DNA from: Octopus sinensis
Taxonomy: Eukaryota
NCBI RefSeq assembly: GCF_006345805.1
Contig: NW_021833258.1
Coordinates: 1 to 64,000 of the forward strand
Length of the DNA: 64,000 bases
Reading direction: 5' to 3'
This document shows positions 24,383 to 60,368 of the stretch, piece after piece. Within the stretch, counting starts at the first letter, position 1; each line of letters starts with the position of its first letter. Made by a program: the position numbers and the translations under genes. Below the pieces are notes generated by a model. The model did no database searches. It was not told the DNA's origin and saw only the letters and a program-made list of their open reading frames with translations.

Positions 24383-27300
24383 ATGGATGACTTTACAAAA
24401 GGAAAAATTATTGCTTTATATGAAACAAAAATGACACTTCGGGCAATTTCTTTGAAAGTTGGGGTACATGAGGCCACAGTGTCTAATTTTATCCAACGAT
24501 ACAAAAAGAATGGCACAATCCATCGGAAACCAGGATCTGGAAGGCCAAAAATACTTGATAAAAATGATTTGAAAGAATTGATAAAGTATTCGGAAGAAAA
24601 TCCAACAAAAACATCTAAAGAGATCTCAAGTGAAATGACGAAACTAACCAATAAAGCAATTTCCTCAAGAACAGTTATAAGAAATCTTAATGAAAATGGT
24701 ATATTTGGACGTATTGCAAAAAATAAGCCATTTTTGAATATAAAACACACTAAAAAAAGATTAGAAATAACGAAAAGATTTCTTGCCATTTCTGATGAAA
24801 AATGGAAAACCACAATTTTCTCAGATGAATGCATTTTTTACGCCAATCCAAACAAAACTCGAAAAATAGTATATAGGAAGAGCGGTGAACAACTTAATTC
24901 CAAAAATATTTCAACAACAGTGAAATTTGGAACAGGTTGATTTGGCTTGAAAACAAAAAATAGGGAAAATCATGATATGGGGATGTTTTTCTTTTAACGG
25001 CGTCGGAGAATTAGTTTTTGTTGACGGAACATTGAATTCTGCAAAATATTTAAATCTTTTAGTCAACAGCCTACCGAGATCAGTTGCAAAAATGGGACTT
25101 AATGACTTTGTTTTTCAACAGGATAATGCACCGTGTCATACAGCGAAGTTAATCATGAATTATTTTGATAAAGAAAATATAAAAACACTAGACTGGCCAT
25201 CCCAGTTACCTGATCTAAATCCAATTGAGCATTTATGGGCTCATATAAAAGCGGAACTCAGTAAAATCGATTTGAAAAATGCTGAAGAATTAAAGCAGGA
25301 ACTTCTTCATATTTGGGGAAATACAGTGAATCCTCGCAAATTGGCCATTTTTGGTACATAGAGATTTTATGGCCAATTTGAGAAAATGGCCAATTTGAAA
25401 AAAATCAATATTTAAAAATAAAATAAACACGTTTAAATTTTATTAAAATAAAATTCAATCCCTAATTCCTTTTTATTTGCTCTTTTTACATTTTCTTTGT
25501 ATTTTCTTATTGCAGTAATCAGCGAAACATCATTCTCATTTTCTGCATTACAGTAAAGTTGCCTTTCTATTCTAGTTAATGTCTTTGCAATATCTTTTCT
25601 ATCGAGTGGATATATGATTTTTGTCTCTTCGTCGCTAATTTCAGACTCTTGATCCTCTTGTAAACAATTTTCGTTTATATCTTGATCTTCTGTGTTTTCG
25701 ATATTTAGAAAATCTTCGCTCATTAGAGGATCGAAAATGTCAGTTCTTTCAATTTCAGTCTCATAATGTTCAATTAATGTATTTTCGTGATTAGATTCAT
25801 TTAAAATCTTAAAACAATTTTGAATAGTTTCAGTAGATACGTCATCCCAAGCCATATTAACAAACAAAATTGCATCTTTTAATGTCAATTTTTTGTATGA
25901 ATTGTATACAGAAATATTTTCAGTCTCCAGCAAATCAGTTAAGTACTGTAGCTTTCTTCTCATGAAATGAGTCTTGAAGGTTTTTATAATTCCAATATCC
26001 ATTGGTTGTAGTAATCCAGTAGAATTTTTAGGAAAAATAAAATCTAATACAATCCAAGTTTTGAGGAATAGAATGTGCAGGACAGTGGTCTATTAGCAAT
26101 AAAATTTTCTTCTTTTTATTTTAAGCTGGAGATCAAAGCTAATAATCCAATCAATAAAAATAGATCCAGTCATCCAAGCTTTCTGTGAGCTATAATATGA
26201 GACAAGACATCCATAGTCAAAATTTTTAAAACATCTAGGCATTTTTGGTTTTCCAATCATCACAGGTTTCAATTTATGACTTCCGGTCATGTTTGAACAA
26301 AGCATAATAGACACACGGTCTTTAAAATTTTTGTATCCTTGGAATCGGTTTCTGCATACGCTTTTCGATGGAATAAGCTTGTAGTATAATGCAGTTTCAT
26401 CCAAATTATAAATTAGATCAGGCTTATACGATTTAGAAATTTCTTAAATTCTTCACGAAAAGAATTAATGTCAACTACTTTATCTGTTCGCATCTCTCCA
26501 TGTAATTTTAGCATTCTAAAACCGTGTCTCTTTTGAATTTTGCCAGAAATCCATTAGAATTTTTAAAGTTACTAAGTTGTAGCTCTTCGGCAAAATGCGC
26601 AGCCTTACACGATATTAAGGAATCATTCAAAAAACCACCTAAAAATTGGTTTTCAATTAATACCTTTAGACTCTATTGTATCCATCCATTCAATCAATTT
26701 TTCTTCAAGCGTAGGAAATTTTGGTTTGTGAGCAGCTTTATACGAATTTTGATAGATTTTCGAATCCCGTAAAATAGAGTCTTTATTAAGCAGTAGATTA
26801 TGATCGTCTTTCTCGAGATCGTCTTGTGGAATAAATGTGAGAATCTGTCAGCCAGAAGCTGACACGAAACACTGTCATTTTCTTCCTTGTAGTTTATAAT
26901 TTGTGTTTTTTCAAGAAAAGTGAGCCGAGTATAACGTCCACGAGAAATTTTATAAGACATGTGATTAAAAAAATAGTTTATTTTCTAATTAGAAAAATAA
27001 TAATTCAAAAATTGTGGCCAATTTGAGAATTGGCCAATTTACTAAGAAAATTAATTTTTTTCTTAGTAAATTGTGCAAAAATTGGCCAATTTAAAAATTG
27101 GCCAATTTAAAAATTGGCCAATTTGCGAGGTGGCCAATTTGCGAGGATTCACTGTACAGTCCGACCCCCAAATGGGGCACCAAGTGCCCCAAAATGCGGG
27201 GGTGCCCCAAAAACAGGGGTTTGTTATTTTTTAAAAATTAAACCATTAATAAACATCAAAAAACATTTTTACTAAAATATTCAGTTATTTTCTTTTTATT

Positions 27301-30300
27301 TATAGAGTTTTGTCTGATACTGTTCGTCAATTTCAGCCGAAAATCAAAAAATCTCGGAGCATACTTGGTGCAACATTAGAAATTTTTTCTTCTAAATTGT
27401 TAAGCAGATCTTTTGTTTTTGCTACGACATTTTCACTATTTTCGGTTTCTGAATATGTATCATAAACATTATTGTTCATGTCTTCGCATTCTCCATCAAT
27501 TGTTTCGTTAACAACTTGATCTAAATGTTCATCTGTTAGACCATAGGTTTTCACGAGAAATTTCTCGCGGCGCAAATGCTAATAAAAAATAATCTCGCGG
27601 CACATAATCAAAAATCAAAACATAATTATAAAATTCCAAATTCAAAATTTATTATTTTTACATAATTTTTCTATGTCTGGCTCAATATTTGATAAGGCCA
27701 GCCGCATTTCTGAATCTAAATCCAGTAGATTTTCTCGCTTATTTGTTTTAATGTTTTGTAATGCAGAAAATCCCTTTTCACACAAATAAGTTGTTGCAAA
27801 TTGTAGAATGATCCGCATTGCTTTATCTGTTATTTTTGGAAATCTAGAACGAATTTTGATCCAAAATTCGCCAATATTTAATTCCGTATGTGATAATTTT
27901 AAGGTACGATCATTAAATAGTTCAATAAGCTCCATATTTTCGAACAATGATAACTCATTACTATGACTAACCAAAAATAGATTCCGTATCTAAAACTAAT
28001 TATTTAAAATAAATACCCAATCATATTTTTCAATGTCTATGTCTGGAAAATAATTATTGACTTTTTGTTCCAATGATGTCAAATGCTCATATATAAGACT
28101 TTGTATTATGGTACCGTCAGAATCTAAATTGGCTTTATAAATTAGAATGCGAAACCATTAGTCTTAGGAAACATGCTAAAATCCCCACTTAATACTAGTC
28201 TTCTCCAATATGTAATATTCATTTTTAAAGCATTTAACTTGTCCGTACAACTCAAAATTGTCTCATTATTTCCTTGCATGCTTAGATTCACATCATTCAA
28301 TATCGAAAATATGTCCGTTAGATATGCTAATTTTAATTTCCAATTCGAATTGCTGATCAATTCATGAAATTGATAGCATTGTTCTCTCGTGAAAAATTCA
28401 GCTATCGTGTCCCTTAATTCATACACTCTGGCCAGTACCCTTCCCCGTGATAACCATCGTATTTCGGTATGTAACAATAAATTTTTATAACTTGCTCCCA
28501 TTTCATCGCATAAAGAATTAAAAATTCTAGAATTTTTAGATCGAGTTTTTATATAATTGATCATTTTTATGACATCATCTATAACTGATTTTAAAGCAGA
28601 CGGAAGAGTTTTCGAAACCAATACTTCACGATGTAAAAAACAATGTGTTGAAAGTATTTGATCATTCTGTGCTTTTAGTAAAGAAACCTGAATTTAATCA
28701 TATAATAAAACAATATACAAGTCCATTAAGTCTTCCAGACATAGATGGTGCCCCATCTGTGAATACACCAACACAATTTTTAAAGGAAATATTATGTTGA
28801 TTAAAATAATCAAATTGTACATATCAATTGCACGAGTAGTAGTAACTAGTGCCTTGCAGAAAAGAAATTGTTCAATAATACTTTCTGACTTTTCAGTACG
28901 AATATAAATAAGCAACTGTGCAATTCCTGCTACGTCAGTTGATTCGTCAATTTGCAATGAATATAAATTGTTTTTCATTATAGATACCACTTTTTCTTCA
29001 ATATCAAACGACATTGTACTAATTCTTCGACAAATAGTATTGTCAGAAAAGGGAATTTTCAATAATTTTTTTTCAAATTCCACGCCAAACATTGTTCGGA
29101 CTATTAATTTGCATGCTGGAAGGATAAGATTTTCGGCAATTGTATGAGGTTTCATTTTCTTGGCAATCAATTCCGATACTAGATAAGAGCACTTTACTGC
29201 ATCTTCTGATTTTCCAAATGATTTTGAAAATGATTTTTTACTTACTCTAAATATGTATATATATAATTATTAACACTACCTATGTTTTTTGCTTAATTCT
29301 TTAAAATAATCAATTGAATAATCTTTATATTCCGGGTGCTTAGATAAAAAATGTCTACGAAGTTTAGATGGAACCATTGATTCATTCGACAACACCTCCA
29401 TGCAAATCAGGCACTGTGGTAAACTATTTCCAGTGCCACAACAGTCAAAACCCATAGATAAAAAAGATGATTTGTAATGACGAATACTCCGATGCACAGA
29501 CATAACAAATAGCAACGTGATTATAATTTATTATAATTGTTTCATTATAAATAATTTTTAAGTTAAAAATTAAACAAAAAATAAGTAAATATAGATCTTC
29601 ACGCGGCACATTTTTTATCATCCCGCGGCACAAAAATGTGCCGCGGCGCAGTGTTTGAAAACCTCTGTGTTAGACAGTTTTTTGTTGCATAAGAATCACG
29701 GTTCCTGTCGATTTTCTTCCAACAATTAACAATACTTTTAGCATCTATTTTCTCCCATCCTTTTGAAATTAGCATCATAACCTGACGCAAATTTAATTTA
29801 CCAATAGAATGTGTAAAATTGTTTTCGAAATCTTGAAAACATAAAAATTCCATAAGAAAGAGGAATAATAATCTTTAAAAATCTTGATTATTCCCATATC
29901 CAAAGGTTGTAAATAGGGCGTTGTATTTTTCGGCAAAAATAAAAATTCGATGTTCGAACATTCGGCAGTTTTATGGCATCCCGCATTGTCAAGTATTAAT
30001 AATATTTTTCTGTTGTTTTTGCAAAACGATTCATTTATAAGTGTAAGCCAACTCATAAAAGTCTTTCCAGTCATCCATGCATTTTGAGAAGATGAATACA
30101 ATAACCCAAAATCTTGAACATCAAAATTTTTTAGACACCGAGGTTTTTTATATTTTCCAATAATCAATGGATTAAGTTTTCCCCCGATTAAACTGCAGCA
30201 TAGAAGAACAGTGAGTCTTTCTTTCCCTTGTTTATAACCAAAACACGGTTCGCCTTGTTCAACAAATGATTTTTGAGGAGTTCTTTTTATAAAAAGCGCA

Positions 30301-31125
30301 GTTTCATCACAATTAAATATATTCTCAGGTCCATATTTTAATACTTTCTGGTCATATTTTTCAAAATAATTTTTCACATAAGATAAATCACATGAAGCTT
30401 TTTCACCACATATTGACTTGAATTGAAGTTCATGCCGCAATTTAAATCTATCAAGCCACCCATTGGAAGCTTTAAAAGAAGTAAATCCAATTTTTGAAGC
30501 TGTAACTAAGGCAATTTTTTTCAAAATAGGGCCTGAAATCGGAATTTTATCTACGCGTAGTCTTTGAAATATTTCAAAGACTTGATCATCAAATTTATCT
30601 TTATCGGCTTTAAATGTGTCATATTCCTCAGAAATAGTATTGCCGTGTTGCAAGAAAGGTACAATATTTCGTTTTATTCTTGATATTGTTCCTTTACTTG
30701 TGTTGTACTTTTTCATTAGTTGCCTCTCAGATAAATTTTTCTTCAAAATTTCTTTAGCAATCTTCAATTTAGTTTCGTAATCCATAACCACAACAATAAA
30801 AATATAAATTGAAAATAAAACAAAAAATAATTAATTTATTATAATTTTATTTTATTTTTAATTCCTTATAAATGATTTTATGGTGCCCCAAAAATTCCAT
30901 AATTTTTTATCGATTTTTATTTTTTTTCTGCCAAAATGTACTTTTGGAATAAAGTGCCCCAAATTGCGGGGGTGCCCCAAAATCCGAGGGTGCCCCACCC
31001 CTGGGGTCTGCCCCATTTTGGGGTCGGACTGTATTCCTAAATATTATATTGAAAAACTTGTTTTATCTATGAAAAAACGTTGTTGGGATATTTTTATGGC
31101 AAAAGGAGGAAATACCAGATATTAA
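24383..31125 (+). CDS. Tc1 DD34E transposase, reconstructable as 334 aa; interrupted in this copy
   Basis: Joining 24383-24935 + 24964-25323 + 31034-31125 gives 1005 nt with no internal stop. This removes a 28-nt GT-AG intron (24936-24963) and the double pogo insertion. Motifs FSDEC, TVKFGTGKIMIWGCF, QQDNAP-x-NPIEH with D-34-E spacing, GGNTRY end. Confidence 0.85.
25324..27154 (-). mobile_element. pogo/Tigger transposon (family 1), frameshifted, with a 25-nt intron
   Basis: TIR CAGTGAATCCTCGCAAATTGGCCA, TA flanks, subterminal AAATTGGCCAATTT repeats. DETAL, KDRVSIMLC, QPMDIGII motifs. Intron 26639..26663 restores EWMDTIESK-G-GFLNDSLISCKAAHFAEEL. Confidence 0.92.
27157..31031 (-). mobile_element. 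pogo/Tigger transposon (family 2), split by a hAT insertion
   Basis: TIR CAGTCCGACCCC(C/A)AAATGGGGCA, TA flanks. ORF 29793..30791 has a CENP-B-like HTH, NCDETAL, KERLTVLLC, LDNAGCH, QPLDMGII; C-terminal piece at 27333..27575. Confidence 0.92.
27542..29667 (-). mobile_element. Buster/ZBED5-like hAT transposon with four micro-introns
   Basis: Perfect TSD TGTTAGAC (27534-41, 29668-75). TIRs CATAGGTTTTCA / CAGAGGTTTTCA. Introns 29247-29279, 28688-28718, 28133-28155, 27990-28016. Motifs zf-BED, IDESTD, TDGAP, HCFLH, RWLSRG, TYLCEKGFS. One frameshift near 28800. Confidence 0.93.
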
Positions 31126-33299
31126 TTACAAAGTTTTTAATTTTGAATCATTTTTTTTGTCACTGACATATACTAACATATTGTGTGTTGTGCTTTTAAT
31201 TTTTCCAAATTAATGTAATTAGCAAATATTTTATTAAAATAAGATCATAATAATTACAACTAATCTACTAAGTTTTTTGAAATTAGAATATTTATAAGAT
31301 TTTCAAAAAAAAACTAAATATGAATTTTGAATCATTTTTTTTGGCGAGGAGTGTAGATTCTGTAAGAATCAGAAGAGGGGTGTCATTTTTGGAGAAGGAT
31401 ACGATCTTAAATCATGTCCTTTGCAGAAGGAGTCCAAAATGAAGTGTGTAAACTTTAGTTCAGACGAGCACCTTTCCTGGTTTTCTGGCTGTCTACATGC
31501 AAGAGAAGCACAAAACAAGCATACACCGAAGGCTACTTCTTTCACAAGTGCTTTAAGGGCTCAGTCAGTGTGGAATCATTCGGATTTAGGTAGAGGAAAT
31601 CTAATTCCATGTTCATTGCTTAATAAATCTCCAATATTTATGAAATGAAGTAATAATATCAATTTTATTCTTTAAAATATAATTTATGGATCAAATCGAA
31701 TGCAAGCCTTTTTCCACTTGCACTGGTTACACCAAGAATCCCTCTGATGAATTCCGTAAAATTTGCGACATTTTCCTATTTTTTGAGCTTTTCTTGGCTG
31801 TTTAAGTGAAATTACTGCCTTTTTAACTTTATAAAAATGGGATTTCTTGTATATAAGGATTAAGTCAAGAAACCGATTTATTCAACGAATTTATTTTCCC
31901 TTTTCCGGAAAATAAAAATTCCGAGATTTTAGATACGTTCAATTTTCTTTTTAACTTTTTACGTTCTCTTGCGTATATTTGGCAGTAAATCGACGATTCC
32001 AAATGCATGTAGCTATATCTAAAAATAAATATCACTAAGTGTTCCAATATTTATTCCAATTAAAATGAATCTTACAATGGCAAACTTTCTGGTACTTGAT
32101 TTTCATCACTTACGTCACTGTCAGAACAGTTTTGCAGTTCAAAAAAACCTTCTTTTAAAAAAGACATGTTTTCGCTTTCCAAAGACTTCTAAAAATTGTA
32201 GTTAAGAGGATTAATCTATTCTTAAAAAATCGACAAAGTTGTATCAATCATTCTAAGTTCTGTCTATTAAATCAGCAGGCATTTTAAAAGAATATTTACT
32301 ATCTGAAATGCTCAAATCGCAATCGACTTGTCAGAAACCATCTGACAGCGATGACGTAGTCATACCGGCATATTTGAATCCTTCTTCGAGAGCATTTTGA
32401 TGGTTTCATTGAGGCGTCGAAAAACAGAATTGTCACTATCATTCGATGAGAGATTTGCTTGTAGTTAAAATTATGTAAAAATACTCCCAAACGTATCCTT
32501 AAAGTCCATTTGATCCACATTGAGTAGATCTAAATTAGGAGGCATTGTTTTAAAATTACCTGGAAAGACTATTGTTAATCATCTTAAACAGTATTACCTA
32601 CGATGCGGCAAATAGTTTTGTAAATATCAATTATACATGTATAGTTATTTAGGTTTGCCTTTGTGAAAGTACTTTTTATATAATTTCAATAAAAGCAAAG
32701 TTTCATTAAAATTAATTGTAATTAGTTCCTTATTTATTTCTTCTCTTAGCTCTCCTTCACTTGGTGCCTGGTCTTTCTGTAGGTGGGGCTGTATGTTCTC
32801 TCGATCCTGAATTTTGATCCCAAAATGTGAATGTTTAGCTAGTTGAATTCAATCATAGTGCTTAAATTCATGCTATCAAGATCTTTTTCAGAAAAACAGA
32901 CCAGATATATACTCTCACCGAGACCTCAACTTTGAACGAATTCATGTGATGTCTACTACCGTGAAACAATTCCGTCCCAGGATAGAACGAGCGGAACATT
33001 TTTACAGTCGCCTCGTGGATCAGATCCAACTCAGAAGCCAGGAGGTCGTATTCGTGGGACTTCTCCACTTTCACTTGATTCAGTGAGATCTGTGATATTA
33101 TTCCAACCTGGATAAGAAATATCACGTCCTGTGCCCTGTCCATAACAAATATGTCCGGTCGGCTGTTTTTTACATCAAAGTCTGTCCTGAGAACGGTGTC
33201 TACTCGTATTTCAACAAGATCGTTTGTCTCCACTGACTGAACAGAATTAGTCTTGAGATTCCTGGACATTTTATTTCATTTATCTTACAAGGTCTAAAT

Positions 33300-35441
33300 C
33301 AGGGCTGGCCAACCCAAGGCCCGCGGGCCGCATGCGGCCCGCGATGGAGTTTGGTGCGGCCCGCGAGAGAAATTTTGTATGTAGTTAACCTATAAATACA
33401 TTCAAGATAATTTTTCTTAAGTTTAATAAATAAAGATAAATTTTATAAGTTTAATAAATTTTAAAGTTTATCTATTTTTGTAGCTGTTATCAATATGAAG
33501 AAAAGGAAAATTTTTGAAGAAAACAGGCAATTCAGCAATCATTGGGAAGAAGATTACTTTTTTATAATGCATAATTCCAAGCCAACATGTTTAATTTGCA
33601 AGGAGAAAGTATCGGTGGTGAAAGAGTACAATGTAAGAAGACATTATGAAACAAAGCATTCCGAATACGCGAAATTTAGTAAGGAATTGAAAACAAGGAA
33701 ACTGGATTCGCTTAAATCTGAATTGAGAAATCAGCAAAGACTATTAAATTCATCGATACACTCTTCTTCTGATACTGTTAAAGCAAGCTACTCTGTTGCA
33801 ATGATAATTTCAAAGAGAATGAAATCATTTTCGGATGGAGAATTCGTAAAAGAGTGTTTGGATGCTGTCGTGAAAGACATTTTGCCAGATAAAACTAAAA
33901 AGTTTTCAAACATTAGCTTGTCACGTCAAACCATATGTCGCAGGGTTAATGACATTTCAAATGAAATTGTGGTGACTTTGCGTGATCAAATAAAATATTT
34001 CAAAAGTTATTCTTTGGCCTTTGACGAATGCACGGATATATCAGACACGTCTCAACTTGTAGTATATATTCGTGGAGTTACCGAATCTTTTCAAGTGAAA
34101 CAAGAAATGCTTAACCTTGTCAGTTTGAAAGATACTACAAAGGGCGAAGATATTTTCCAAGCTGTTATGAAATGTTTATCCGACAATGGAGCGAATTTAG
34201 AGACCCTTGCTGGATTGACAACAGATGGGGCGCCGGCTATGATTGGAAGAAATAAAGGAGTTGTAAAGCTAATAATGGATGAGATGGAGTCAAGAAGCAT
34301 AAAAAATGATTTATTTGTAATACACTGCTTGATACATCAACTCAATTTGTGCGCGCAAGTGTTGTCTATGAACCATGTTATGAGTGTGGTTGTAAGAACT
34401 ATAAACTTCATTCGTTCTCATGCACTTCAACATCGCCAGTTTAAAGAATTATTGAACGAGTTATATTCTCACTATGGTGATCTTGTGTATTTTTCCAATG
34501 TCAGATGGCTGAGTCGCGGAAAATGTTTAAAACGTTTTTTCGACTTGAGAGAAGAAATCAAAAGTTTTATGATGCATAAGAAAATGACATTAACTGAATT
34601 AAATGATGAAGAATGGATGCTAGATCTGTGCTTTTTGGTAGATATAACCGAAAAAATTAATCAATTAAACAAGGAGTTACAAGGACAGGATAATTTGATT
34701 ACTAATGCATGCCATCAAGTCAAAGCATTTCGAATGAAATTGTCATTGTTTGAATGTCAAATAAGAAATGGAAATGATCAACATTTTCCAACGCTAAATC
34801 AATTTAAAATCAGCCATTGTAAAAATTTCTTCAAGTACGCTGATGAAATAAAAAATCTTGCTGCAGCATTTGACAGTCGATTCTCGGAACTAAAAAAATA
34901 TGAGAAAATGTTTGAAACATTTTCTTCTCCATTTCATGTTGACGTTTCTATTGTTTCAAATACTTTGCAGACGGAAATAATTGACCTACAGTGCAACAGT
35001 GAACTAAGACTTGTTTATCCTACTATATCCAAAATTGACTTTTATAACAAATATGTGACTGCAGAAAAATATCCCAACTTAAGAATTTTTGCACAAAGAG
35101 TTGTAAGCTCCTTTGGATCTACTTACGTATGTGAATCATTCTTTTCGAAATTAAAGTTTAGTAAAAGTAGATATAGATCTTCTTTAACAGATAAAAACTT
35201 AGAAAACCAATTAAGATGTGCAACTAGTAATTGTGAAGTTGATTTGAAAAAATTAAATGAAGATAAAGAAAAACAGATTTCTCATTGATACGTATAATTG
35301 GACTGAATGCTATTTTACTAAATAAAATCTTATCTGTGTTGTTTTGATATCTATCCTTAGTATGTACATGTATATGCGGCCCGCGGAAAGGATTCATTTG
35401 GACAAAGTGGCCCGCGATGCGATTTGGGTTGGCCAGGCCTG
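33300..35441 (+). mobile_element. Full-length hAT transposon (GTF2IRD2/SPIN-like, Buster group)
   Basis: TIRs CAGGGCTGGCCAACCCAA / CAGGCCTGGCCAACCCAA. Perfect TSD GTCTAAAT. Subterminal GCGGCCCGC repeats. Confidence 0.97.
33495..35288 (+). CDS. Intact, intronless 597-aa hAT transposase
   Basis: zf-BED (CLIC..RRHYETKH), catalytic D (FDECTD), D (TTDGAP), CxxH (CLIH), RWLSRG, E (STYVCESFFS) and dimerisation domain, with no stop or frameshift. Confidence 0.95.
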   Translation: MKKRKIFEENRQFSNHWEEDYFFIMHNSKPTCLICKEKVSVVKEYNVRRHYETKHSEYAKFSKELKTRKLDSLKSELRNQQRLLNSSIHSSSDTVKASYSVAMIISKRMKSFSDGEFVKECLDAVVKDILPDKTKKFSNISLSRQTICRRVNDISNEIVVTLRDQIKYFKSYSLAFDECTDISDTSQLVVYIRGVTESFQVKQEMLNLVSLKDTTKGEDIFQAVMKCLSDNGANLETLAGLTTDGAPAMIGRNKGVVKLIMDEMESRSIKNDLFVIHCLIHQLNLCAQVLSMNHVMSVVVRTINFIRSHALQHRQFKELLNELYSHYGDLVYFSNVRWLSRGKCLKRFFDLREEIKSFMMHKKMTLTELNDEEWMLDLCFLVDITEKINQLNKELQGQDNLITNACHQVKAFRMKLSLFECQIRNGNDQHFPTLNQFKISHCKNFFKYADEIKNLAAAFDSRFSELKKYEKMFETFSSPFHVDVSIVSNTLQTEIIDLQCNSELRLVYPTISKIDFYNKYVTAEKYPNLRIFAQRVVSSFGSTYVCESFFSKLKFSKSRYRSSLTDKNLENQLRCATSNCEVDLKKLNEDKEKQISH

Positions 35442-45630: not shown

Positions 45631-47905
45631 CAAGCCTCGTGAGGCCATTAATTAGCTTAGCTATCTTTTTTCGATGACATAAATTCTTTTTTGTTAAATT
45701 TTCGTTAAAAAAATAAAATAAAAGCTCTAATTGTTATCGACCATGAATAGACTGTGCAATTATCAGATTTTGAAAACCACTAAAAAGGAAAAAGCAAAAA
45801 TTATTAGAGATTTACATAATTGATTCTTTTTAACTGCCGAAACTGACAAATTCGATTATGCTACTGTTTAGATTTCTTAAAAGATAGAGGCAAATAAAAT
45901 TTAAATTAGTCATGTAATTTCAATTTGCCTATATTTAAATCTCCTTGATTTAACAGGCTTTAATTTTTTTCCTTATAATACTACAAAGATGAAGCTGATT
46001 ATCATTTTCTTTACCGAAACAGACAAGTTCGATTATGCTAAAGTTTCAATTCCTTTAAACATAGAGGCAATTAAGTATAATGGCTTTGATTGGATAATAC
46101 ACTTTACATAAATTTCACTAAATAAATTTACGTAGAAAATTTAATATAAATTACTGATTCGCGTTTACAAAATCATAAGAATGTCCTATAAAGAGAGATC
46201 TGAGAATGTTAACAAACAAGAGAATATGAACCATATAACAAAAAAAGAGAAACGAGGGAAGATGTGCTTAAATGGTGAGGGAACTTAGACAACAGCTGAA
46301 CAAGGTCAGGACTGCTGTTAGACTCAACTACGGGTAATAGAATTATGCATTCTAGGTTAATTGTTTGGGATGAATGTACGATGGCTCATAAAGGCGCATT
46401 CAAGCAGTTGACCGAACATATAGAGATATCAAGAATTGTAGCGACCATTTGTTTGGGGGAGCATTAGTTGTATTGGCAGGTGATTTTAGACAGACGCTGC
46501 CAATTATTCAAAGAGGGACGCCTGCGGATGAATTGAATGCCTGCCTCAAATCGTCATATTTGTGGACACACGTGAAAAAGGTAAGCTTAGATGTAAATGT
46601 ACATGCACATTTACAAGGCGTTAATAGCATATTCCCACAAATCCTTCTAGATATTGGAAATGGGGCAATCACTTCAGAAATGCACGACCAGAAAATTAGG
46701 CTACCGGAAGAATTATGTATTTTCGTAGAAACAGCAGAAGCATTATTGAATGCCGTCTATTCCGAACTATCTGAACACTACGTGAATTTCGACTGGCTGC
46801 GTGAACGAGCTATATTAGCTCCACTTAATGATGAGGTACTTAATATAAATTTAGATTTATTAATGAAAATCCCTGGCAGAGAAAGAATATATAAAACGGT
46901 CGACGTTATTATGGACCATGAAAGGGCCTGCGATAGATTTAAGAGACTACAATTTCCGCTGAAGATAAGTTTTGCTATGACAATAAACAAGGCCCAGGGA
47001 CAGTCTTTAAAGGTAGTAGGCTTATTTTTAGAGAACGAGTGCTTTTCACATGGCCAGCTGTATGTGGGGTGCTCAAGGGTAGGTAGAAGAGAAATTTATT
47101 TATATTTGCCAAGGATGGACGGACTGCAAACATCGTTTATCCACAGGCCTTAGAATAAGGTTATATCAAAGCAGGTCGCATTTATATATCTACATAAATT
47201 TATAGTTATTTAAGGAAACTGCGAGCGTAGCGAGCAGGGCCTCCGCAGGAGCTAGCTCGCAGTGAGCGAAGCGAACTGCTGAGCTAGTGTTATATATAAC
47301 TGTAGGCCACACACACATTAGTAATGGCCACTGCATCCCCTGAACGGACGTAGGATATGGCATCTCGGAGATTTACCAGATAAAGTGGCCACAGATGTTC
47401 AATGAATGTTCTAGAATGAATAATCAGGCATAATCACCCTCCCTCAGATGGATAGTTCAGTATAAATCTACTGCTGGAGGAATATGCAGCTGAATAATAA
47501 ATATATATTACTAACCATGTCGAACAGGCCAACTTTCGTCTCCAAATAAAGTCAAAAACATGTCAAAAAATGAATTAACATGAGGTTCCATGACTTGGTG
47601 GTCAATATATCAATTTTTGTCACATTTTGTGACCTTCAAGACCAACTCGTTCACAGCCAAACATGCTGATTCTCTCACAGCGTGATTCTCCGCCTGACAT
47701 TCCTCCAAATAATAAATAACCTGCAAAATATAACCAACCAACCACCGTCTCCTTCATGTTCTGCTCAATCAGGGACCTTCCCTCATTCCCAGTGATCTCT
47801 GGCCACGCCCTCCGAGCCAACAACCTGACTCCCTTTCCCAAATAGTGCCTATTAAGACACAAAGGTGGCAATAAAATCGATAAATATTGATTTTTCATTG
47901 ATAAA

Positions 47906-49739: not shown

Positions 49740-50110
49740 GTGCGTCTGCTTTCAATCGATTCCCCCTTCGATCCCGAGCCAATGTCTTCGACGGGGACAC
49801 TTATCCATTTTACAGGCAGGCCACTTTTGTGGTTGTTCACGAGTCCGATTGGAATGAAGCTTCTATGGTCTCACTCGGGGAAGCTTCCTCCGTCGTTGCA
49901 ACCCGTGTTATTTGACGATCTTCGGGTAAGTACATACCAAACATATATTCTGTACGCATGCTCTTCAATGTTTTCCGAATGACCACATACTGGATATAAG
50001 CTCTTCTTAAGTAGTCACTTTTTAGCATTCGACCACACCTCTTCGCTAAGTGATCAACTGTCTTTTGGCTGAGATACAATGACTGCACAATGCTTGTCAA
50101 AAATAGGTCG
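49740..50110 (-). mobile_element. RLE retrotransposon fragment with internal deletion
   Basis: KTVDHLAKRCGRMLKSDYLRR is fused directly to AYIQYVVIRKTLKSMR. Confidence 0.75.
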
Positions 50111-50183
50111 ATTCTCGAGTAATTATTTCCATGAGATAACGACTTAGAGGATTCATCAAAATCAACGTTGGGATCATTTAAAC

Positions 50184-50690: not shown

Positions 50691-51384
50691 TATAGAAATT
50701 AAATATAATTATTCTCACAAGATTATATCCATTTACATTTTGACCTCTCCGATTACGTGATGGTTCAGGGTTAGCTTAAATCTTTATTTCATAATAAGAT
50801 TCTTCACAAAATTTACAATCCAGTGAGGGAGTCCAGAATTTTCGAGGACCTGATACAGAAAGTCGTGATCGACCAAATCAAATGCTTTCTTCACATCATT
50901 CCGAGTAGAAAACAAATTATTTCCGTTTTGTTTTTGAATGCACTAATTAATTATTGCCTGCTCCTTAGCACCCTGGCACAGTCGTTGAGTTCGTAGCTGA
51001 TTATCGGCAATCAAGCTATATGCTTCAATATAATCTCCCAACATTTTGGTTACACATTTCGTAGCGGGCTTATATAAGTTAGGCATACATGGAAACACAA
51101 AAACATTATTTCCAATCTTTGTTGATTTTCTATAGATATATGTGCTTACAAATAAAGATATGCACCTAGGACAAATCTAACAAAGTTTCTAGTTTATATA
51201 TAAATCAATTTTAAAAATTAACCAGAAACATCAAGAGGGACTGTTAGAAACATATTTAATTCCACTGTCAATGAAACTGTATAAATACGACCCCCAACCA
51301 TCAACACTCTCGTCTAACTTTCCTCCTAAAAATCAAAAAAAATTTGAGAAATTGATAACCCTAATGGAATAACAAAGATAGTAC

Positions 51385-51900
51385 ATGGGGACGGAAAAAA
51401 ACCTGACGGGATCACTGTGTTTCCCTTCAACAGGGGAAGCCTCTTACCTGGAATGCCACGTGTGTGGACTTTTTCTCGCCTCGGAACCTGCTGACGGCAA
51501 GTGCCTCGTCTGGGATGCTACGTGCATCGATTCTTTCTCTCCATCGGCAATCATGTCATCTGCCACTTCCCCCGGGTCCGCTGCGGAAAAGGCTGAGACG
51601 GCCAAAATTAAAAAATACCAAGAACTTGGACGCCGTTTGATATTCGTACCAATCGCTTTGGAGACATCGGGCGTTGCAGGGCCTATAACTTTGGCCTTCA
51701 TCAGCGACATCGGGAGGAAATTGGCCCACAGGACGAAAGAGCCACGCGAGGTTTCGTGGCTATTGCAGCGGATATCCATCGCCATTCTCCGTAGCAACAC
51801 GCATGCGGTACTTTCCGAGGAGGGTGCGTGCTTTAGCCCCCCGGAATTTCCCCTCTGTACATTCCTAACTTAATTTGTTTTCTCTGAAATTAAAAACACA
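51385..51900 (+). mobile_element. 5'-truncated CRE-type RLE retrotransposon
   Basis: DGK.PDG..LVWDATCIDS..AETAKIKKY..IALETSG..WLLQRISIAILRSN. Confidence 0.88.
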
Positions 51901-52114
51901 TTTTCTACAATAATAAACTAACAATTATTTTTTGATATGACTTTTGATTACCCTACTAATTTAATAAATCTAGTTAACATCGAAGCTATTGTGTTAAAGT
52001 GTTAAAGTCTAAGCTATGTCTTACAATAACGAAAATCAAAAAGCACAAGAAAATGATTCAGGTTGTATTTAATCACTATTTTTTATTTAGAATGGAACTT
52101 AAATACTTATTCTA

Positions 52115-52520
52115 TACTAGCTCGGCAGCTCGCTTCGCTCACCGCGACCTAGCTCCTGCGGAGGGCCTGTTTCATCAAACAACTATAAGTTTATGTAGAT
52201 GTATAAAACTACTACCTTTAATGACTGTCCCTGGGTTTTGTTTATTGTCATTGCAAAACTCATCCTCAAAGGAAATTGCAGCCTTTTAAATCTAAATGGT
52301 AATTCATCAAAAATTATCGGAATTCGTGGAATATAAACATCCTCACCTCTATACTTACCTGTTAATATCGTCGCCACTACTATTAGCCATCAATTTTTGA
52401 TAACTAACCTCGTTCCGTTGCATAATTTAGGTGGCGCAAGATTTCGTAATAAAACCACTGGAACGCCTATCTTTAACTTTAAAAGATGATTCGGCATTCG
52501 AGAGGGATCTAAGGAGTTTA
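52115..52520 (-). mobile_element. Helitron 3' end with Pif1 helicase fragment
   Basis: The reverse complement of 52115-52170 matches the 3' hairpin-CTAG end at 47235-47287. Translation [44 protein letters not shown]. Confidence 0.88.
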
Positions 52521-52904
52521 AAAATTCAATCCGGTTGAATTTTTAGAAAATAACAAAAAAAATAAAAAAAACAAATAAAAATAAATAATTTAAAAACAAA
52601 AAAATAAAAAAAAACAAAAAAAAACTTTAAAAATTTGTGTAATAGTATAAACAAAAAAAATCTCTGCCGCCACGGCAACAACCTGTCTAATTTTTTTAAC
52701 AGCCAATTAAGATAATGCTTAAGAGCCTTTATAGTCCGAAGATTTAGCTTAGTGACCTTGATTAGACAAACCACTGGCGGAAATGGGGCACCTGGAGATG
52801 GGGCAGGCAGAGATGCGGCAGGCAGAGTAGCAGCAGCCAAAAAAGCGACACACAATAAAGATTAAATTAATTACCTTAAGCTGACCGTTTTTTCTTCAGC
52901 TTCG

Positions 52905-53130
52905 TTTTTCCTCCTTCGTTTATCTATTTAAAAAATTATTTTTGAATAATAAAAAATATTAGGAAAAAAGAGGCATACAGAAAATAAATTCTATCTTTAC
53001 GAAAAACTTCTTTTCTTAAGGTCGTCTTCCCTCCTTCGGTTATCTATTGAAAAAATTATTTTTGAATAATAAAAAAGTTTAGGAAAAGAAGCATACCGAA
53101 AATAAATTCCATCTTTACGAAAAACTTAAC
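52905..53130. repeat. Two ~120-bp direct repeats
   Basis: CTCCTTCG(T/G)TTATCTATT..AAAAATTATTTTTGAATAATAAAAAA..AGGAAAA..GCATAC.GAAAATAAATTC.ATCTTTACGAAAAACTT occurs twice. Confidence 0.8.
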
Positions 53131-53389
53131 TAAATATTTAATATTTTTACGCAAATTCTTCTGATTGCGCTGTCAATTGGTGGTAAATTGTGTTAATGAT
53201 TGTGGAAAAAAAGTTTTGCACGTTGTTGCTGTTGTTGTTCATTTCATTTTCTCTTTCAATTTTCTTTTTCATTCTTTGTTTTCTTTCTCTTTTCACTTTT
53301 TTTCAATCTTTTTTCGTTCTATCTAACCCACTCTTTTTCATCTCATTCTTTCTTTCCTATCTCATCTTACTTTATATCTCTCTATCCCC

Positions 53390-53563
53390 ATGTCATTTTG
53401 TTTTTTTTGTAAATCTGTTAATTCTCGCAAAACTGGTCGTTCCTGCGCCTCTTGCAATCAGTTTTTCCACCTCTCGTGTGTTAAACTCACTAAACGTGAT
53501 TCGGCGTCAATCCTTTCTTGGAAGTGCCCCTCATGCCTCCCACACACGTGGATCCCTAACTAA
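53390..53563 (+). CDS. PHD finger (C4HC3) at the start of the CRE-type ORF; 57 aa before a frameshift
   Basis: MSFCFFCKSVNSRKTGRSCASCNQFFHLSCVKLTKRDSASILSWKCPSCLPHTWIPN*: C-x2-C-x11-C-x2-C-x4-H-x2-C-x13-W-x-C-x2-C. Confidence 0.8.
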   Translation: MSFCFFCKSVNSRKTGRSCASCNQFFHLSCVKLTKRDSASILSWKCPSCLPHTWIPN

Positions 53564-54910
53564 GCCTTCTCCCCTCCCGGCGCCCATCCCGCCTGACAAG
53601 TTTCTGTCGCTTCTTTCCGAATCCCGAAGCCTCCGCGTAATCCCTGCAAGAATTCCCAAATCTGCGCGAATCTGCGTTGCTGATACGCTATCCGACATAA
53701 TCGATCAGTCCCTTAAAAGCAATCTTCCAGAACTTGGTGCAAACTATTTTCGTTTCCTTCTGTTTGTCTGGGAGCTGCCCCTCGTAAAACGGAGTCAGTA
53801 AATAGGACATCGGCCGCTCAGCAGATTAAAGACCGCTGCAGTTCGTTGATAAAGGCACCCTTCGACTTATCATGGATCACGCCAGATCGCCCCTCGACCG
53901 CGAAATCTCGCGGGCCTCTTAAACAAGACGAAGGGGTACGCTTAGCCCGGTCAGTTAACAGCAAACTAATGCAGGGAGATGTCTCTGCTGCTGTTCGCCT
54001 TATTTCATCCACGGCATCCATTGCCCCGCATACTGATTCTGTTCTGAATTCACTCCAGTTGAAACATCCTCCCCCTCCACCTGATATCCGTGAACCCCCT
54101 CACATAGCCAAAACCGAACGAATTGTTTCCTCCAGTGACGTGTTAGCCTGCCTTGGATCATTTCCACCGAGCAGTAGCGGGGGAGTAGATGGCCTAAAGC
54201 CGATACACCTAAAGGATCTTGTCGCGCCCATGACAGGGGAATCTGGTGCACGCCTCCTGTCCTCGATTGCATCCTTGTGCAGCAGAATTGTCTCTGGAAA
54301 TATCCCATCTTTTGCACGCGATTTATGTTCTCGGCCAAACTGACGGCACTTAATAAATTGATGGGGCATCAGACCCATCGCTGTGGGAAACACATTCAGG
54401 AGGCTCTCTGCAAAAATTATCCTCACTGTTATCCTCCTGATTTGAGCTCTCAGCTGCTGCCACATCAGTTCGGTGTCGGTGTTCGCGGTGCTTGTGAGGC
54501 TTCTGCCCATGGGGTGAGGGAGTTGATCATCAATGGCAATCCAAAAATCCCATATCTTGTTAAGCTGGACGTGCGCAACGCTTTTAACAGTGTTCGCAGA
54601 GACCACATCCTGTAAGTTGTGCACACCCGCTGCCCGGCACTCTACCCAATTGTCCATCTATCTTATGCGCGTTCCTCGAATCTCCTTTTTGGGAAAAATC
54701 TGCTGTCTTCAGCGTCTGGGGTTCAGCAAGGGGACCCATTGGGACCTCTCCTATTTGCCCTCGCAGTGGACCATATTGCTCAAAGGCTTTTGTGCCCGTT
54801 AAATTTCTGGTATCTCGACGATGTCACCTTAGGTGGCTCGCTTGAAAATATTCATAACGACGTTGCTGATATTATTTCGGGTTTTAGCCAAATTGGCTTA
54901 TCCCTTAATG

Positions 54911-57053
54911 CAGTGGTTCTCAAACTTTTTTTCCTTGCGTACCCCTTGCCATCTAAATAATTTTTCGCGTACCCCTTATCGATTTTTAAAAATTAAGGAA
55001 AAAAAATATTTAATTAATGAGATGGATGGTGTTGTTTATCAATCACTAATCTATCGATTTCTGGATCCTTTGACGAAAGACACACCCGAATATCATGAAC
55101 AACATTCAGCCTCGCACGATGAACTGATTTAATTAAACAACGATGAAACCTTGTTCGCAGAGATATGTAGTCGGAAACAAAAGCAAAAAATCGATTATAT
55201 AAAATCCAATATTGTGATATTTTGATGTCATTTTACACCAAAATTCAATTAATGGTGCAGATTCAAATAAGATTTTTGACTCGTAAGAATTTATTAATTC
55301 AATAACTTCTTCTTGAATATTTGAAGGCAAAACATTAACTTTTACGGAAAAAGGATTGACAAAAAACTTAAGATCTACTTCATTAATTTCAGGTATATAT
55401 TTTTCAATTTCATTCTTCAATCCAAGTAAATGGAAGTTATTTGATGTTTTAAATTTTCTATTTCATTTAATTTTAGATGGAAAATGTTTTCATTCAACTT
55501 ATCAAACATAGTAAAATTAGAATTTGTTGTATTATCTATCCACAGTTGGAGCTTCATACGAAAAGACCTACAATATTGCATTATTTCGTAAAAAACCTTG
55601 TTTTTTCTAAAAAGTCAACAATGGTAACTCCCTTAGTTTGTACCGATAAATTCAAAGCATTAATTCGCGAAAAAATGTCCGTTAAATAAGATAGCATTAC
55701 ACCCCAATACATATTGATAACTTTGATAAATATAATTTTTATTTTCGCGAAAAAAATATTCATAAATTTCATTCTTCAAACTGTGCACTCTGGAAAGAAA
55801 TTTCCTTTGGATAACCATCGAACTTCTGTGTGATATAGTAAAACCTTCTCATCTGAACCAAATTCTTCACAAATTGAATAAAAATTCGCGAATTTAAAGG
55901 ACTTTTTTTGATATGATTGACAATTTTAATAACATCGTCAAGAACATTTTTAAGTTCAAGAGGCATTGTCTTCACAGCAAGAACATAACGATGCAACATA
56001 CAGTGAAGATGTTTTACATTTGGATTGACAGATTGTACTCTACCTCGGAAACCAGAGTTACATCCAAGCATAGCTGGTGCTCCATCTGTGGTGCATGCAC
56101 TAAGATTTTGCCACAATAGGCCTATCATAAGTAAAAAATCAAAAATGTACCTTCTGTTTCAAAAAAACAATTAACTGCATCGAAAATATCAGAACCTTTG
56201 TGTTTAAAGGTAAGGAATAGTTGAACAAAAATTCTTCCTTAATATTTTCCATATAAAATATCGCACATAAACGAGTAACTGAGAGCAATTTGCTACATCT
56301 GTTGATTCATCCAATTGAATTGAAAATTTTTTAAAGGCAGCACTTTTTATTTCAGTAATGACCTAATAATAATTAACCAGAAAATAACTTGTTCTTTTAT
56401 GTTTTCGGATAGATCTCGTATTCTTCTATTGACGGTATCATTTGAACATGGAATTTTTCGAACAATATGCTCCAATTTATTGCCAGGGAAACATTCAAAC
56501 ATGTCCTTAATGCGTATAATAAGATTCTCGGCAATTGTATGTGGTTTTTTTTGGCTTTTGCGATCCGATATGAAATCATGTAAGAGAGTTTTGATAGTAA
56601 AAAATAATGTCAAAATTGAAAGAATCGTCTATTTTCCGAATATTATCTTTTTTTTCTTAAAAAATCATTTGGTTTTCCGATAGTTTCGAAATGATTAGAA
56701 ACTTGATGCCGAGAAAGTAATGAAGGTTTCATGGATTCAGGGCAAAGAATCTTTTGGCAAATAATACACTGCGGATGTGGCACACCGTTTTTAATCACAA
56801 AATAAAATCCATAGTTGAGATAACTATCGTTGTATTTTCGAATCTTGTTAACAGGTAAACTCAGAAAACTAGTAGCGTGGAGATTTATTTTATTATTATT
56901 ATTTAATTTAATTATGATTTTTATTATAATTAGAATTAATAACTTTTTTATGTTGAAACGAAAATTAAATAGATTTTCAAAAAATTTTCGCGTACCCCCT
57001 ACAGAATTTCGCGTACCCCTAGGGGTACGCGTACCCCAGTTTGAGAACCACTG
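54911..57053 (-). mobile_element. Buster/ZBED-like hAT with at least two micro-introns, frameshifted
   Basis: TIR CAGTGGTTCTCAAAC, perfect TSD CCTTAATG. Introns 56363-56388 and 56122-56150 restore IKEQ-VITEIKS..LDESTD and FETE-G-LLWQNLSACTTDGAP. Confidence 0.93.
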
Positions 57054-58058
57054 CCTTAATGGCTCCAAGTCGGAATTTACCCTGCTTTTCTCGATCATTC
57101 TTTATTTTATCCTGCTTTCACGTCCCTGTCCAGAAAGTTGTCGGTCTCTCTGCGACAGACCCGGACGATCTGGTCATCCTTGGTTCACCAATCTCTGGTC
57201 GAGGTATTTCCGCCGCCATTGACGTAAAAAACGCAGCTGGTCAAACACTGGAGCGTATCTCCCAACTGGCGCACATGTCGGGCTATTCCTTATAAGAATT
57301 ACCTATTCATCCCCCGCCTAACCTACCTATTCCGCTCGTCTCCATGCTTTCGGGAACCAGACCTCTTGTCCGACCTGGACTCCGTAATCTGGAAGTCAGT
57401 TGGGAAGCTTCTTAATGTTGACTTTGGCGGGGACCTACTTACCCGCGCAATGTTACCCCTCCGTTTCGGAGGCATCGGTATCCGCTCGTGCAAAGACATT
57501 TCTATCCCATGCTACCTATCTTCGCTCTCGGCATCAAGAAATTTTGTCAGTTCTGTTCTTTTTCGCTCCCCTGAACGTTTTGAACTAGCTGAATTTTCTT
57601 CTGCCCTCGCTGCCTGGACCGCCTCAGGTCTTTCCTTCCCCGTGGAGGATCACTTGCTGAGGAGTTGGGACTCCATCCGCTGCAAAGAAGTGGTAAAGTC
57701 CCTTAAAGGAAGCGCCGATCAAGTTAAACTCGCCTCGTTGAATGCAGCCTGTCACCCGCATTCTGGAGACTGGTTGAAAGCCATCCCTCTGTCCACCGCT
57801 GGCCTCCTCTTGGATGATGAATCGACTCGAATCGGGACCTGTCTTCGTCTGGGAATTCCCCTCTGCCACCCTCACCGGTGCAAGTGCGGCCACATGATGC
57901 CCCGATGGTCTCCACCCCCTTTCGTGCCGCTTAAGCACCGGGCGTATCCCGAGACACGCTGGCCTGAACCACGTCGTCAAACAGGCCCTCAATGCCGCAG
58001 GCTTCCCTTCTGTTCTGGAGCCTGCCGCCTCGACCGTCGCGACGGCAAGCGTCCAGAC

Positions 58059-60368
58059 CAGTGGTTCTTAACCTTTTTTAAGTCAGCGCCCCCTTTGACA
58101 CAATTCGAAGCTTCAAAATTTCAGCGCCCCCCTATTATTTAATTTATTTTTTTCAATTATAGATTTATTGGCAATTTTTTCGCCAATTGTTTCATTTTAA
58201 TATTTTCGAATATTACTTATTATTTTTTTAGAATTAAAAAGGGTATTCACAAACCAAACTTTTTTATATAAAAAAATTTTAGTGACTGCCTTGTGCTTGA
58301 TGGGAATTTGTCAATCGTTTTATGTCAGCTTCAATAGTCGACAGACTTAGTCTCAAATCTCCTCTATTCACAATTTGTAATTTATTTCTTTTTTTGGTCA
58401 AAATATTAGAGACTGCACTAAATCCTCTTTCAACTAGATATGTTGAAGGAAATGCTATTATAAGTGTTTCAATTTCATTCCACAATAAAGGATATTTTTT
58501 TCTATGAGTAACCCAGAATTGTTGATATCCATATTTGTTGAAAATGACTTTAGCTTCAAAGTCATATTTCAGATTTAATAAATTTTCTGTTATTTCTTGA
58601 GATAAATTAACGTTTTCAGTTTCAAATGGATTTATATACCAATCAAAAAATTTTAAATTTTCTAAATCTTCAAAGCGGATTTTCATGTCATCTTTAACAT
58701 TTTTAGATGCAAGCAAAAGCATTCACAGTCAGAATCCGTTAATTTTTCGACCTAATAAATATTATTACAAAAAATAACCCCAATTTTTGTAGATTTGGAA
58801 AATTAATAAAAATCTTTTTCTTAATATTGTTTTCATAAAGTTGTAATTTTTCAATAAAAGGCATAATAATTCCTTTTACATTTATTAAATTGATATTGTT
58901 TCCTTGCAAGCTAATATTTACTTGGTTGATTTTATAAAAAATATCAGCTAGATAAGCTATATCAGCTTTCAATAAAATCAACTTACTAAAATGATTAAGG
59001 AATAATTACCTAAAAATTCTCTGCTCATGTAACTGACAAAATTCTAAGATTGAATCATACAATTCAAAAAATCGACACAAACAGTTTCCTTTTGAAAGCC
59101 ATCTAACATGGGTATGCAAAAGAAGTCGTTCATAATGCTCATCGTTTTGTTCACAAATATGTCGAAATATTCTCGAATTCAATGGGTGCATTTTAATACG
59201 ATTTATTGCACATATGACAACATTTAGTGATTCATTCAGCCTCTCACTTAAATTTTTCGCAGCTAAATGCTGTCTGTGAATGACGCAATGGATTGTAAAA
59301 ATATTCGGTACTTTTTCCTTCATATATGCCAAAAACCCACGATGAACTCCAACCATCGCAGGTGCCCCATCTGTTGAACAAGCAAAAATATTGCTAAGGG
59401 GTATTTCATGTTTCAAAAAATATTGTTCAACAGTTTTGAAAATTGTTAATCCTCTTGTATCGAGTTCAAGGTGTTCAGAAAATAAAAATTCTTCTTGAAT
59501 TACATCATTTTGATTAATATAACGTACGTAAACTAATAAAAGTGCAACACTATCGTTGAATGTCGATTCATCAATCTGAATTGAAAATTTTGTTGTTCTT
59601 AAAAATGCACATAGGGTTTCTTCGATATCAAATGCCATTTCATCAATTCTGGAAGAAACAGAACTATTACTCAAAGGAATTGATGAAATTATTTGTTCAG
59701 AATCACAATCAACCATTGAATTTAACACTTCTTTGATAGCTGGTAATATTAATGACTCTCCAATAGTATGAGGTTTTCCTGATTTCGCTATCAATTGCGA
59801 TATTTTGTATGATGCTAATAGGCCTTTTTCAAGCATCTTCGAATTTTTTTGTAAATAGTTGATTAATCATAAGACGATTTTCATAATTATATTTCAGATT
59901 AGAAAAATAATTGATATCCGCATCAAGTTTGTCAGGATGACAAATCTTAAGATGATTTAGCATTCTTGAAGGCTTCATTCCTTCATTTGTAAAGACCTTT
60001 TTACACATAAGACACATTGGAAGTGAATTGTTATGGTCGTAGGGTATCACTCCAAACTTTAGGTATTCATCCGAATATATACGTCGTTTTACTTTTATCA
60101 GACATCTATAAAATATAATTAAAATATTTATTAAAAAGTTCTAAAATATTAAATACAATTAACAAATATTTATAAATATTATCAGTGAATAATTTTTTAC
60201 GTACACACACAGACAATTTGAATTTAGAATTAATAGAAAAGCACGTGATAATGATTTACAAAAACTAATAAAATATTTATAATAATTAAAAAAATTAAAA
60301 TTCCAGCGCCCCCCTAATATGTTCCAGCGCCCCCAGGGGGGCGCCAGCGCCCCCGTTAAGAATCACTG
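58059..60368 (-). mobile_element. Buster/ZBED-like hAT with two micro-introns
   Basis: TIRs CAGTGGTTCTTAAC / CAGTGATTCTTAAC, perfect TSD GTCCAGAC. Intron 58986-59009 and probable intron 58752-58778. IDEST, TDGAP, HCVIH, RWLSKG, STYLVERGFS all present. The remaining breaks are 1-nt indels in homopolymer runs. Confidence 0.93.

Follow-up and report, generated by a model that had tools for sequence, protein, structure and literature searches.

The first 64,000 nucleotides of contig NW_021833258.1 (scaffold C9729) in the Octopus sinensis assembly GCF_006345805.1, called here the window, contain a pile of nested transposons between 24.3 and 60.3 kb. Pfam matches identify in this pile a Tc1-type element, two pogo elements and several hATs. 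The transposase genes of five of these families (Tc1, pogo-1, hAT-A, hAT-B and hAT-C) are each interrupted by one to four short inserts, 11 in total, which measure 23–33 nt and have GT and AG at their ends in all 11 cases within the window. We consider it very probable that these inserts are ordinary GT-AG spliceosomal introns, of the ultra-short type found in the cellular genes of the same lineage. The scaffold itself most likely stems from a parasite of the octopus, for reasons given below.

The disrupted elements were read in three frames to recover the inserts. All introns, those of the transposons as well as those of the squalene epoxidase (SQLE) and OPRT-like genes, were placed by homology, because ab initio calling by the longest open reading frame (ORF) had picked a false pair in SQLE. 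That procedure, which chose one GC-rich GT..AG pair, was dropped. Further copies of the families were sought in the whole Octopus sinensis assembly (2.72 Gb), where each family has many copies at 98–100% identity outside the window. Copies fetched from this assembly are designated by L-numbers.

The Tc1 copy of the window is complete, with terminal repeats at 24274 and 31187, but it is split at a TA by a 5.7-kb nest consisting of pogo-1 and pogo-2, the latter containing hAT-A. The identification of the DDE half of Tc1 relies on its conserved motif and not on Pfam. The pogo-1 element is bounded by CAGTGAATCCTCGC repeats. All three of hAT-A, hAT-B and hAT-C have Pfam Dimer_Tnp_hAT matches, together with weak DUF4371 matches in single-ORF pieces, and their relatives carry PF14291, PF27073 and PF05699. 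The window copies of the five intron-bearing families are all dead, through 1-nt indels or nested insertions. Besides the introns, pogo-1 has six private 1-nt deletions, hAT-A has one private 1-nt indel, hAT-C about four and hAT-B many; most of these extra indels fall in homopolymer runs. Nesting is several layers deep, both at 24274-31187 (Tc1, pogo-1, pogo-2 and hAT-A) and at 53187-58139, where a long interspersed element (LINE) is split by hAT-B.

Table 1. Introns, transposable elements and cellular genes of the window (introns listed in order of transcription within each element).
Feature	Position	Strand	Intron length (nt)	Remarks
Tc1 intron	24936..24963	+	28	GT..AG; junction VKFGTG/KIMIWGCF after removal
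pogo-1 intron	26639..26663	-	25	junction TIESKG/GFLNDS; same sequence in 12/12 copies fetched
hAT-A intron 1	29247..29279	-	33	phase 2; in-frame stop
hAT-A intron 2	28688..28718	-	31	phase 0
hAT-A intron 3	28133..28155	-	23	phase 1
hAT-A intron 4	27990..28016	-	27	phase 0; in-frame stop
hAT-B intron 1	56363..56388	-	26	phase 0
hAT-B intron 2	56122..56150	-	29	phase 1; removal gives exact spacing before TDGAPAM motif
hAT-B intron 3	55568..55596	-	29	phase 2; junction EKTR/SFRMKLQLW; absent from the original list
hAT-C intron 1	58986..59009	-	24	phase 2; in-frame stop
hAT-C intron 2	58752..58778	-	27	phase 0; ends in in-frame TAG; tenth intron of the original list
Tc1-family element, 5' part	24274..25323	+		positions 1-1050 of the 1204-bp full copy; coding sequence starts at 24383; Pfam HTH_Tnp_Tc3_2, blastn against L004
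Tc1 element, 3' part with terminal inverted repeat	31032..31187	+		positions 1049-1204 of the same copy
pogo-1 element	25321..27156	-		coding sequence from 26960 down to ~25436; Pfam DDE_1 in pieces
hAT-A element, Buster/ZBED5-like	27542..29667	-		8-bp target duplication GTCTAACA; inserted in pogo-2
pogo-2	29668-30830	-		Pfam HTH_Tnp_Tc5 and DDE_1; 1-nt frameshifts only
hAT-B element	54911..57053	-		terminal repeat CAGTGGTTCTCAAAC; perfect 8-bp target duplication CCTTAATG; inserted in LINE
hAT-C element	58122..60300	-		right end approximate; coding sequence from 60105 down to ~58282
Intact intronless hAT, GTF2IRD2-like clade	33465..35285	+		607-codon open frame
Squalene epoxidase (SQLE) gene	9516..11163	+	26, 29, 29, 26, 28, 24, 25	seven introns; Pfam SE
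OPRT-like gene	19876..20481	+	30, 23, 25	at least three introns

Inserts of the five families and introns of the cellular genes

An original prediction, made from the letters of the window, had listed ten GT..AG inserts, and all ten were recovered at their places and with their lengths. It had also stated that nine of them would shift the frame or add a stop if retained. This was confirmed for all ten, and retention of any one of the 11 introns leads to a frameshift or an in-frame stop. The claim that their removal restores the frame exactly stands locally but not for the elements as a whole, as the window copies carry further private 1-nt indels or nested insertions. Similarly, the single G that had to be restored for the tenth intron is needed in the window copy only. 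The defect at intron 2 of hAT-C is a 1-nt deletion private to that copy, and the sister copies L054, L055 and L056 need no repair.

The cellular genes of the window provide a reference set of introns. As predicted, the sizes agree, with 23–33 nt in the transposons and 23–30 nt in SQLE and OPRT. The median length is 27 nt for the 11 transposon introns and 26 nt for the 10 host introns (Mann-Whitney p 0.52). The transposon introns are however more AT-rich, with 19% GC compared to 28% in the host introns (p 0.02). The two sets also differ in their exon context. Transposon introns have AG before the donor in 6/11 cases and host introns in 0/10 (Fisher p 0.012), and G follows the acceptor in 7/11 compared to 2/10 (p 0.08), both comparisons being made on a small sample. 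For the ten inserts listed originally, the predicted counts of five (AG before the donor) and six (G after the acceptor) were found again. This enrichment of the AG/G context may mark intron gain at proto-splice sites.

The 11 transposon introns show no significant similarity to each other, in agreement with the prediction that their sequences are not obviously related, nor to their flanking exons. There is therefore no sign of tandem duplication as their source. Moreover, neither terminal repeats nor flank duplications were found at the introns, and comparison with the flanks and with the other introns revealed no trace of how they arose.

Sister copies and the age of the introns

The inserts are present in every fetched near-identical copy that spans the site, at the same place and with identical or nearly identical sequence. 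All five families have intact copies, in which the ORF is interrupted by these inserts alone. In Tc1, copy L004 has an intact 334-aa ORF only after removal of the intron, and in pogo-1 copies L031, L032 and L033 yield an intact 502-aa ORF once the 25-nt intron is taken out. Taking the four introns out of the hAT-A copy L019 leaves an intact ORF of 584 aa. In hAT-B, intact ORFs of 593 and 592 aa are obtained from L043 and L047 only with all three introns removed. Finally, deletion of the two introns, with nothing else changed, leaves an intact ORF of 592 aa in each of the three hAT-C copies named above. The intact copies lie on scaffolds C8460 (Tc1), C12461 and C10215 (pogo), C12471 (hAT-A), C10950 and C1794 (hAT-B), and C9499, C8993 and C1794 (hAT-C). 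That frames of 334–593 codons, in DNA of about 30% GC, should be opened by the removal of exact segments would lie far beyond chance and cannot be put down to it. The families appear to be young and are apparently active.

Diverged relatives extend this picture further back. A Tc1 subfamily that is 82% identical has an intron at the same site, of 37 nt compared to 28 nt, both lengths being 1 mod 3; of its two copies, L009 has a GT donor and L008 a GC donor. In a Tc1 family that is 68% identical, the match spans 580 versus 581 nt across the site, a length that only suggests the presence of the intron. Three diverged relics of hAT-A were examined. Intron 1 is kept as 31 nt, with GT and AG intact, in L065 and L066 (79–81% identical), and intron 2 is kept as 30 nt, again with GT and AG intact, in L067 (87% identical). 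As the introns occur in all fetched copies and in diverged relatives, they belong to the family consensus and are older than the present burst of copies. Thus the inserts are fixed in each family, and the possibility raised by the original prediction, that they might be private to single copies, was not borne out.

Scaffold C8713 (29488-55753) represents the same locus as positions 9000-35290 of the window and shares with it both the transposon insertions and the private indels. Its SQLE shows a few amino-acid differences from that of the window, and the scaffold probably represents a further haplotype of the parasite population. Because the indels are common to C8713 and the window, the 1-nt indels can be argued to be real mutations and not assembly errors. 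Elsewhere in the window, an element of ~390 bp at 4688-5080 has the terminal repeats of hAT-B and part of its 3' end, and is probably a non-autonomous deletion derivative of hAT-B.

Origin of the introns and of the scaffold

When the three spliced hATs are aligned with their relatives, the nine hAT introns occupy nine different columns, and the intronless relatives align straight through. Only intron 3 of hAT-A and intron 2 of hAT-C come close to coinciding; they are separated by three residues and differ in phase. The predicted difference in intron positions among the three hATs is therefore seen throughout. The closest outside relatives of hAT-A are ~50% identical to it. One of them, P0125 (50%), located on a genomic contig of 1.09 Mb, consists of one ORF without interruption. 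For the hATs checked, the closest outside homologues thus lack introns at the same positions, as judged from the alignment and, for genomic DNA, from P0125. Within the window, pogo-2 reads straight through the site of the pogo-1 intron, and a second Tc1-like element at 17189-17800 reads straight through the site of the Tc1 intron. No micro-introns were found in pogo-2 or in a GTF2IRD2-like hAT at 61971-63942 (+), both of which contain 1-nt frameshifts only.

Another member of the GTF2IRD2-like clade, the hAT at 33465-35285, is intact and intronless. Full-length copies of it number at least 21, with 99–100% identity and all on small scaffolds, and its nearest outside relative, a Logan contig from SRR10294826, is 81% identical. 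This element is a candidate for recent horizontal acquisition and continuing activity, and the identities would fit a newcomer that has not had time to gain introns.

The simplest reading is that the introns were gained within this lineage and not inherited, because they are family-wide, because their positions differ among the hATs and because P0125 is uninterrupted; for Tc1 and pogo the comparison covers elements of the window. The repeated gain of micro-introns put forward by the original prediction is favoured by the nine positions and by the intronless P0125, although we infer it from these comparisons. Gain is also favoured by a quick tree, in which support values were not considered and which places hAT-A closer to outside elements than to the other two hATs. 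The converse would be that the transposons arrived by horizontal transfer with their introns, which later shrank to the size usual in the host. Transposase introns are common in other hosts (Ac, Tol2, Tc1/Tc3 and P), which counts for inheritance, as do the age of the Tc1 intron within this genome and the restriction of the Tc1 and pogo comparisons to in-window elements. However, inherited introns would be difficult to reconcile with nine hAT introns at nine different positions, with the absence of introns from the nearest genomic outside relative of hAT-A, or with a pogo-2 and a second Tc1-like element devoid of the introns of pogo-1 and Tc1. We therefore regard inheritance as unlikely.

A stronger version of the gain, which we put forward as a tentative possibility, is that active dicyemid DNA transposons acquired ultra-short introns de novo, repeatedly and fairly recently, with at least nine independent gains in the hATs in addition to those in Tc1 and pogo. 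If true, this would offer one of the rare animal cases where intron gains could be dated relative to an intronless ancestor and studied for their mechanism. Introns too short for ordinary animal spliceosomes might also confine the elements to the parasite. This would agree with the lack of such elements on the octopus chromosomes, although host and parasite are in contact throughout life. Gains of introns are rare among animals, and the cellular genes of dicyemids have been reported to have conserved intron positions. The single-exon outside relatives would provide a clear earlier state for these transposons, and the families could show how, and how fast, introns of 23–33 nt arise in the animal lineage with nearly the shortest introns known.

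The lineage in question is most likely that of a dicyemid (Dicyema-like) renal parasite, the DNA of which would have been co-assembled with that of its Octopus sinensis host. Dicyemids inhabit the renal sacs of cephalopods, and Dicyema japonicum, with a genome of 67.5 Mb, 36.7% GC and 49% repeats, was collected from O. sinensis (PMC6736024). The median dicyemid intron is 27 bp (PMC6543705), and among animals introns below 30 nt have been reported only for Dicyemida and Myxozoa (PMC13644364). The cellular genes of the window, with their many introns of ~27 nt (seven in SQLE and at least three in OPRT, all of 23–30 nt), fit this dicyemid pattern. Moreover, the scaffold is small, and seven repeat families (the five intron-bearing ones, the intronless hAT and the LINE) give ~390 matches in the assembly, all at coordinates below 1.2 Mb. 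The scaffolds with such matches and a reported length are all shorter than 0.7 Mb, and none is chromosome-scale. Genes of the octopus look unlike those of the window: the only UMPS gene found lies near 64.8 Mb on scaffold C5, with exons spread over 50 kb; the assembly search therefore does reach chromosome-scale scaffolds.

Could the scaffold be genuine octopus DNA, either because the octopus has micro-intron genes and transposons of its own or because its germline took up parasite DNA? The sequence does sit in the Octopus sinensis assembly, and NCBI annotated its proteins as octopus; database proteins 99% identical to the intact hAT at 33465-35285 are likewise named Octopus sinensis. In addition, no second SQLE of octopus type was detected, since a Pfam SE search of the whole assembly yielded only the micro-intron SQLE and partial duplicates of it. 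Against this possibility stand the confinement of the seven repeat families to scaffolds with coordinates below 1.2 Mb, the widely spread exons of the octopus UMPS, the restriction of reported animal micro-introns to dicyemids and myxozoans, and the presence of the same locus on a second haplotype scaffold, C8713. We consider an octopus origin very unlikely. An octopus-type SQLE had been envisaged as proof of two organisms; this argument was dropped after the Pfam SE search, and UMPS was used instead.

The partial SQLE duplicates (on C453, C9338, C12760 and C12464) comprise the last three exons, are 58–78% identical and keep their micro-introns. The NCBI gene models on C9729 and C8713 are mis-built, two 'squalene monooxygenase-like' models fusing a hAT fragment to SQLE and reading micro-introns as coding sequence. 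The public octopus assembly and its protein annotation thus appear to hold parasite scaffolds, with micro-intron genes that are mis-modelled and named octopus.

Probable splicing of the transposon introns and known systems

That the inserts are spliced is inferred from three lines of evidence: the ORFs of young, multi-copy and apparently active families open only after their removal, the inserts belong to the host intron class, and GT and AG are kept in diverged relatives. The element is copied as DNA, so that the introns travel with each copy. Transposase would then be made only from messenger RNA spliced by the parasite spliceosome, as an unspliced message would run into a frameshift or an in-frame stop at each of the 11 introns. 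Since the intact ORFs are obtained only after splicing, this implies that the parasite spliceosome handles such introns in young and probably active elements.

Alternatively, the segments might be excised from the DNA itself, as happens to internal eliminated sequences in ciliates, instead of being spliced from RNA. In dicyemids, there are reports of circular DNA under developmental regulation and of DNA elimination. Many circular contigs are present in a dicyemid assembly (Zverkov et al., PMC6543705), and no spliced products were found here in the protein collections. On the other hand, in both their GT..AG ends and their exact size class the segments agree with the dicyemid spliceosomal introns established in the literature from cDNA and RNA-seq, the neighbouring SQLE and OPRT genes carry segments of the same kind, and the segments lack the terminal repeats or flank duplications that were looked for. 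Excision from DNA is in our view highly improbable. As for decay, by which random small insertions in dead copies would happen to begin with GT and finish with AG, it is hardly credible: although the window copies are dead and bear other lesions, GT..AG pairs 20–40 nt apart are common in AT-rich DNA and the ab initio model of SQLE did pick one false pair, it is refuted by the intact sister copies, which have different flanks and so are not assembly duplicates of one locus, and in which the same inserts recur in every copy fetched as the sole ORF interruptions of five families, are kept with GT and AG in diverged subfamilies, and contrast with remaining lesions that are 1-nt indels and never blocks of 23–33 nt.

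Several observations temper the case for splicing, for a dicyemid source and for gain of the introns in that lineage. Neither a near-identical full-length spliced hAT-A protein nor a near-identical SQLE was found in a collection of 5.8 billion proteins, where the closest proteins to the spliced queries, apart from the faulty NCBI models, are 51% (hAT-A) and 37% (SQLE) identical. An exact-sequence look-up of six spliced proteins likewise returned 0/6. These missing proteins are an absence of data and not evidence against splicing. The best outside match of SQLE, at 37%, is to a fish, and no close relative of this SQLE was found in the protein collections; this identity would fit a fast-evolving lineage but proves nothing, being evidence neither for nor against a fast-evolving spiralian. 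Of the outside hAT relatives, most lie on short contigs that are possibly transcripts, and the intronless state in genomic DNA is represented by P0125.

Spliceosomal introns are well known from transposases of other hosts, among them those of the hATs Ac of maize and Tol2 of medaka, of Tc1 and Tc3 of C. elegans, of Minos and of the P element. The original prediction of an undescribed system is in this respect overstated, since intron-bearing transposase genes, hATs included, are familiar. As in these cases, the elements of the window are DNA transposons that carry their introns as DNA, have their transposase message spliced by the host and possess introns of a size typical of that host. They differ in that the introns are 23–33 nt long, below the size that most animal spliceosomes handle, and in that several families of one genome are concerned, each with its own positions. 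Animal hATs of the Buster/ZBED5 type are usually single-exon.

Intron IVS3 of the P element is retained in a tissue-specific manner, its splicing being germline-specific, and the resulting repressor product has been shown experimentally. Retention of the introns described here would similarly truncate the transposase, but nothing in the window points to regulated retention. The roles suggested by the original prediction, in which the introns would license transposase expression or act as a splicing switch like that of the P element, found no support. In the case of introners, the mobile elements themselves turn into introns of host genes. They too tie transposons to intron gain, but the relation is reversed, as the introns considered here lie inside transposon genes and lack similarity to each other or to their flanks.

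The introns resemble most directly the micro-introns described in dicyemid host genes (Ogino et al. 2010; Lu et al. 2019, PMC6736024; Zverkov et al. 2019, PMC6543705; PMC13644364). They belong to the same size class, with a median of 27 nt compared to 27 bp, and have in common with them the GT..AG ends, weak splice-site motifs and an AT-rich interior, of which SQLE and OPRT are typical. The published introns belong to cellular genes and have conserved positions, whereas mobile genes are affected here, at positions not common to their relatives. In the dicyemid genome papers PMC6736024 and PMC6543705, a link between transposons and introns was sought with the term 'transpos', which gave no match. 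The single match in PMC13644364 refers to the transposon content of myxozoan genomes and makes no link to introns. The elements are thus a further example of the known habit of transposases to carry introns, and not a new system. What is new is the presence in transposases of ultra-short introns of the dicyemid class, in several families with positions of their own against an intronless background.

Outside the elements discussed above, the window has an ORF at 46392-47150 (+) that resembles the helicase of a Helitron or a Pif1-type protein.

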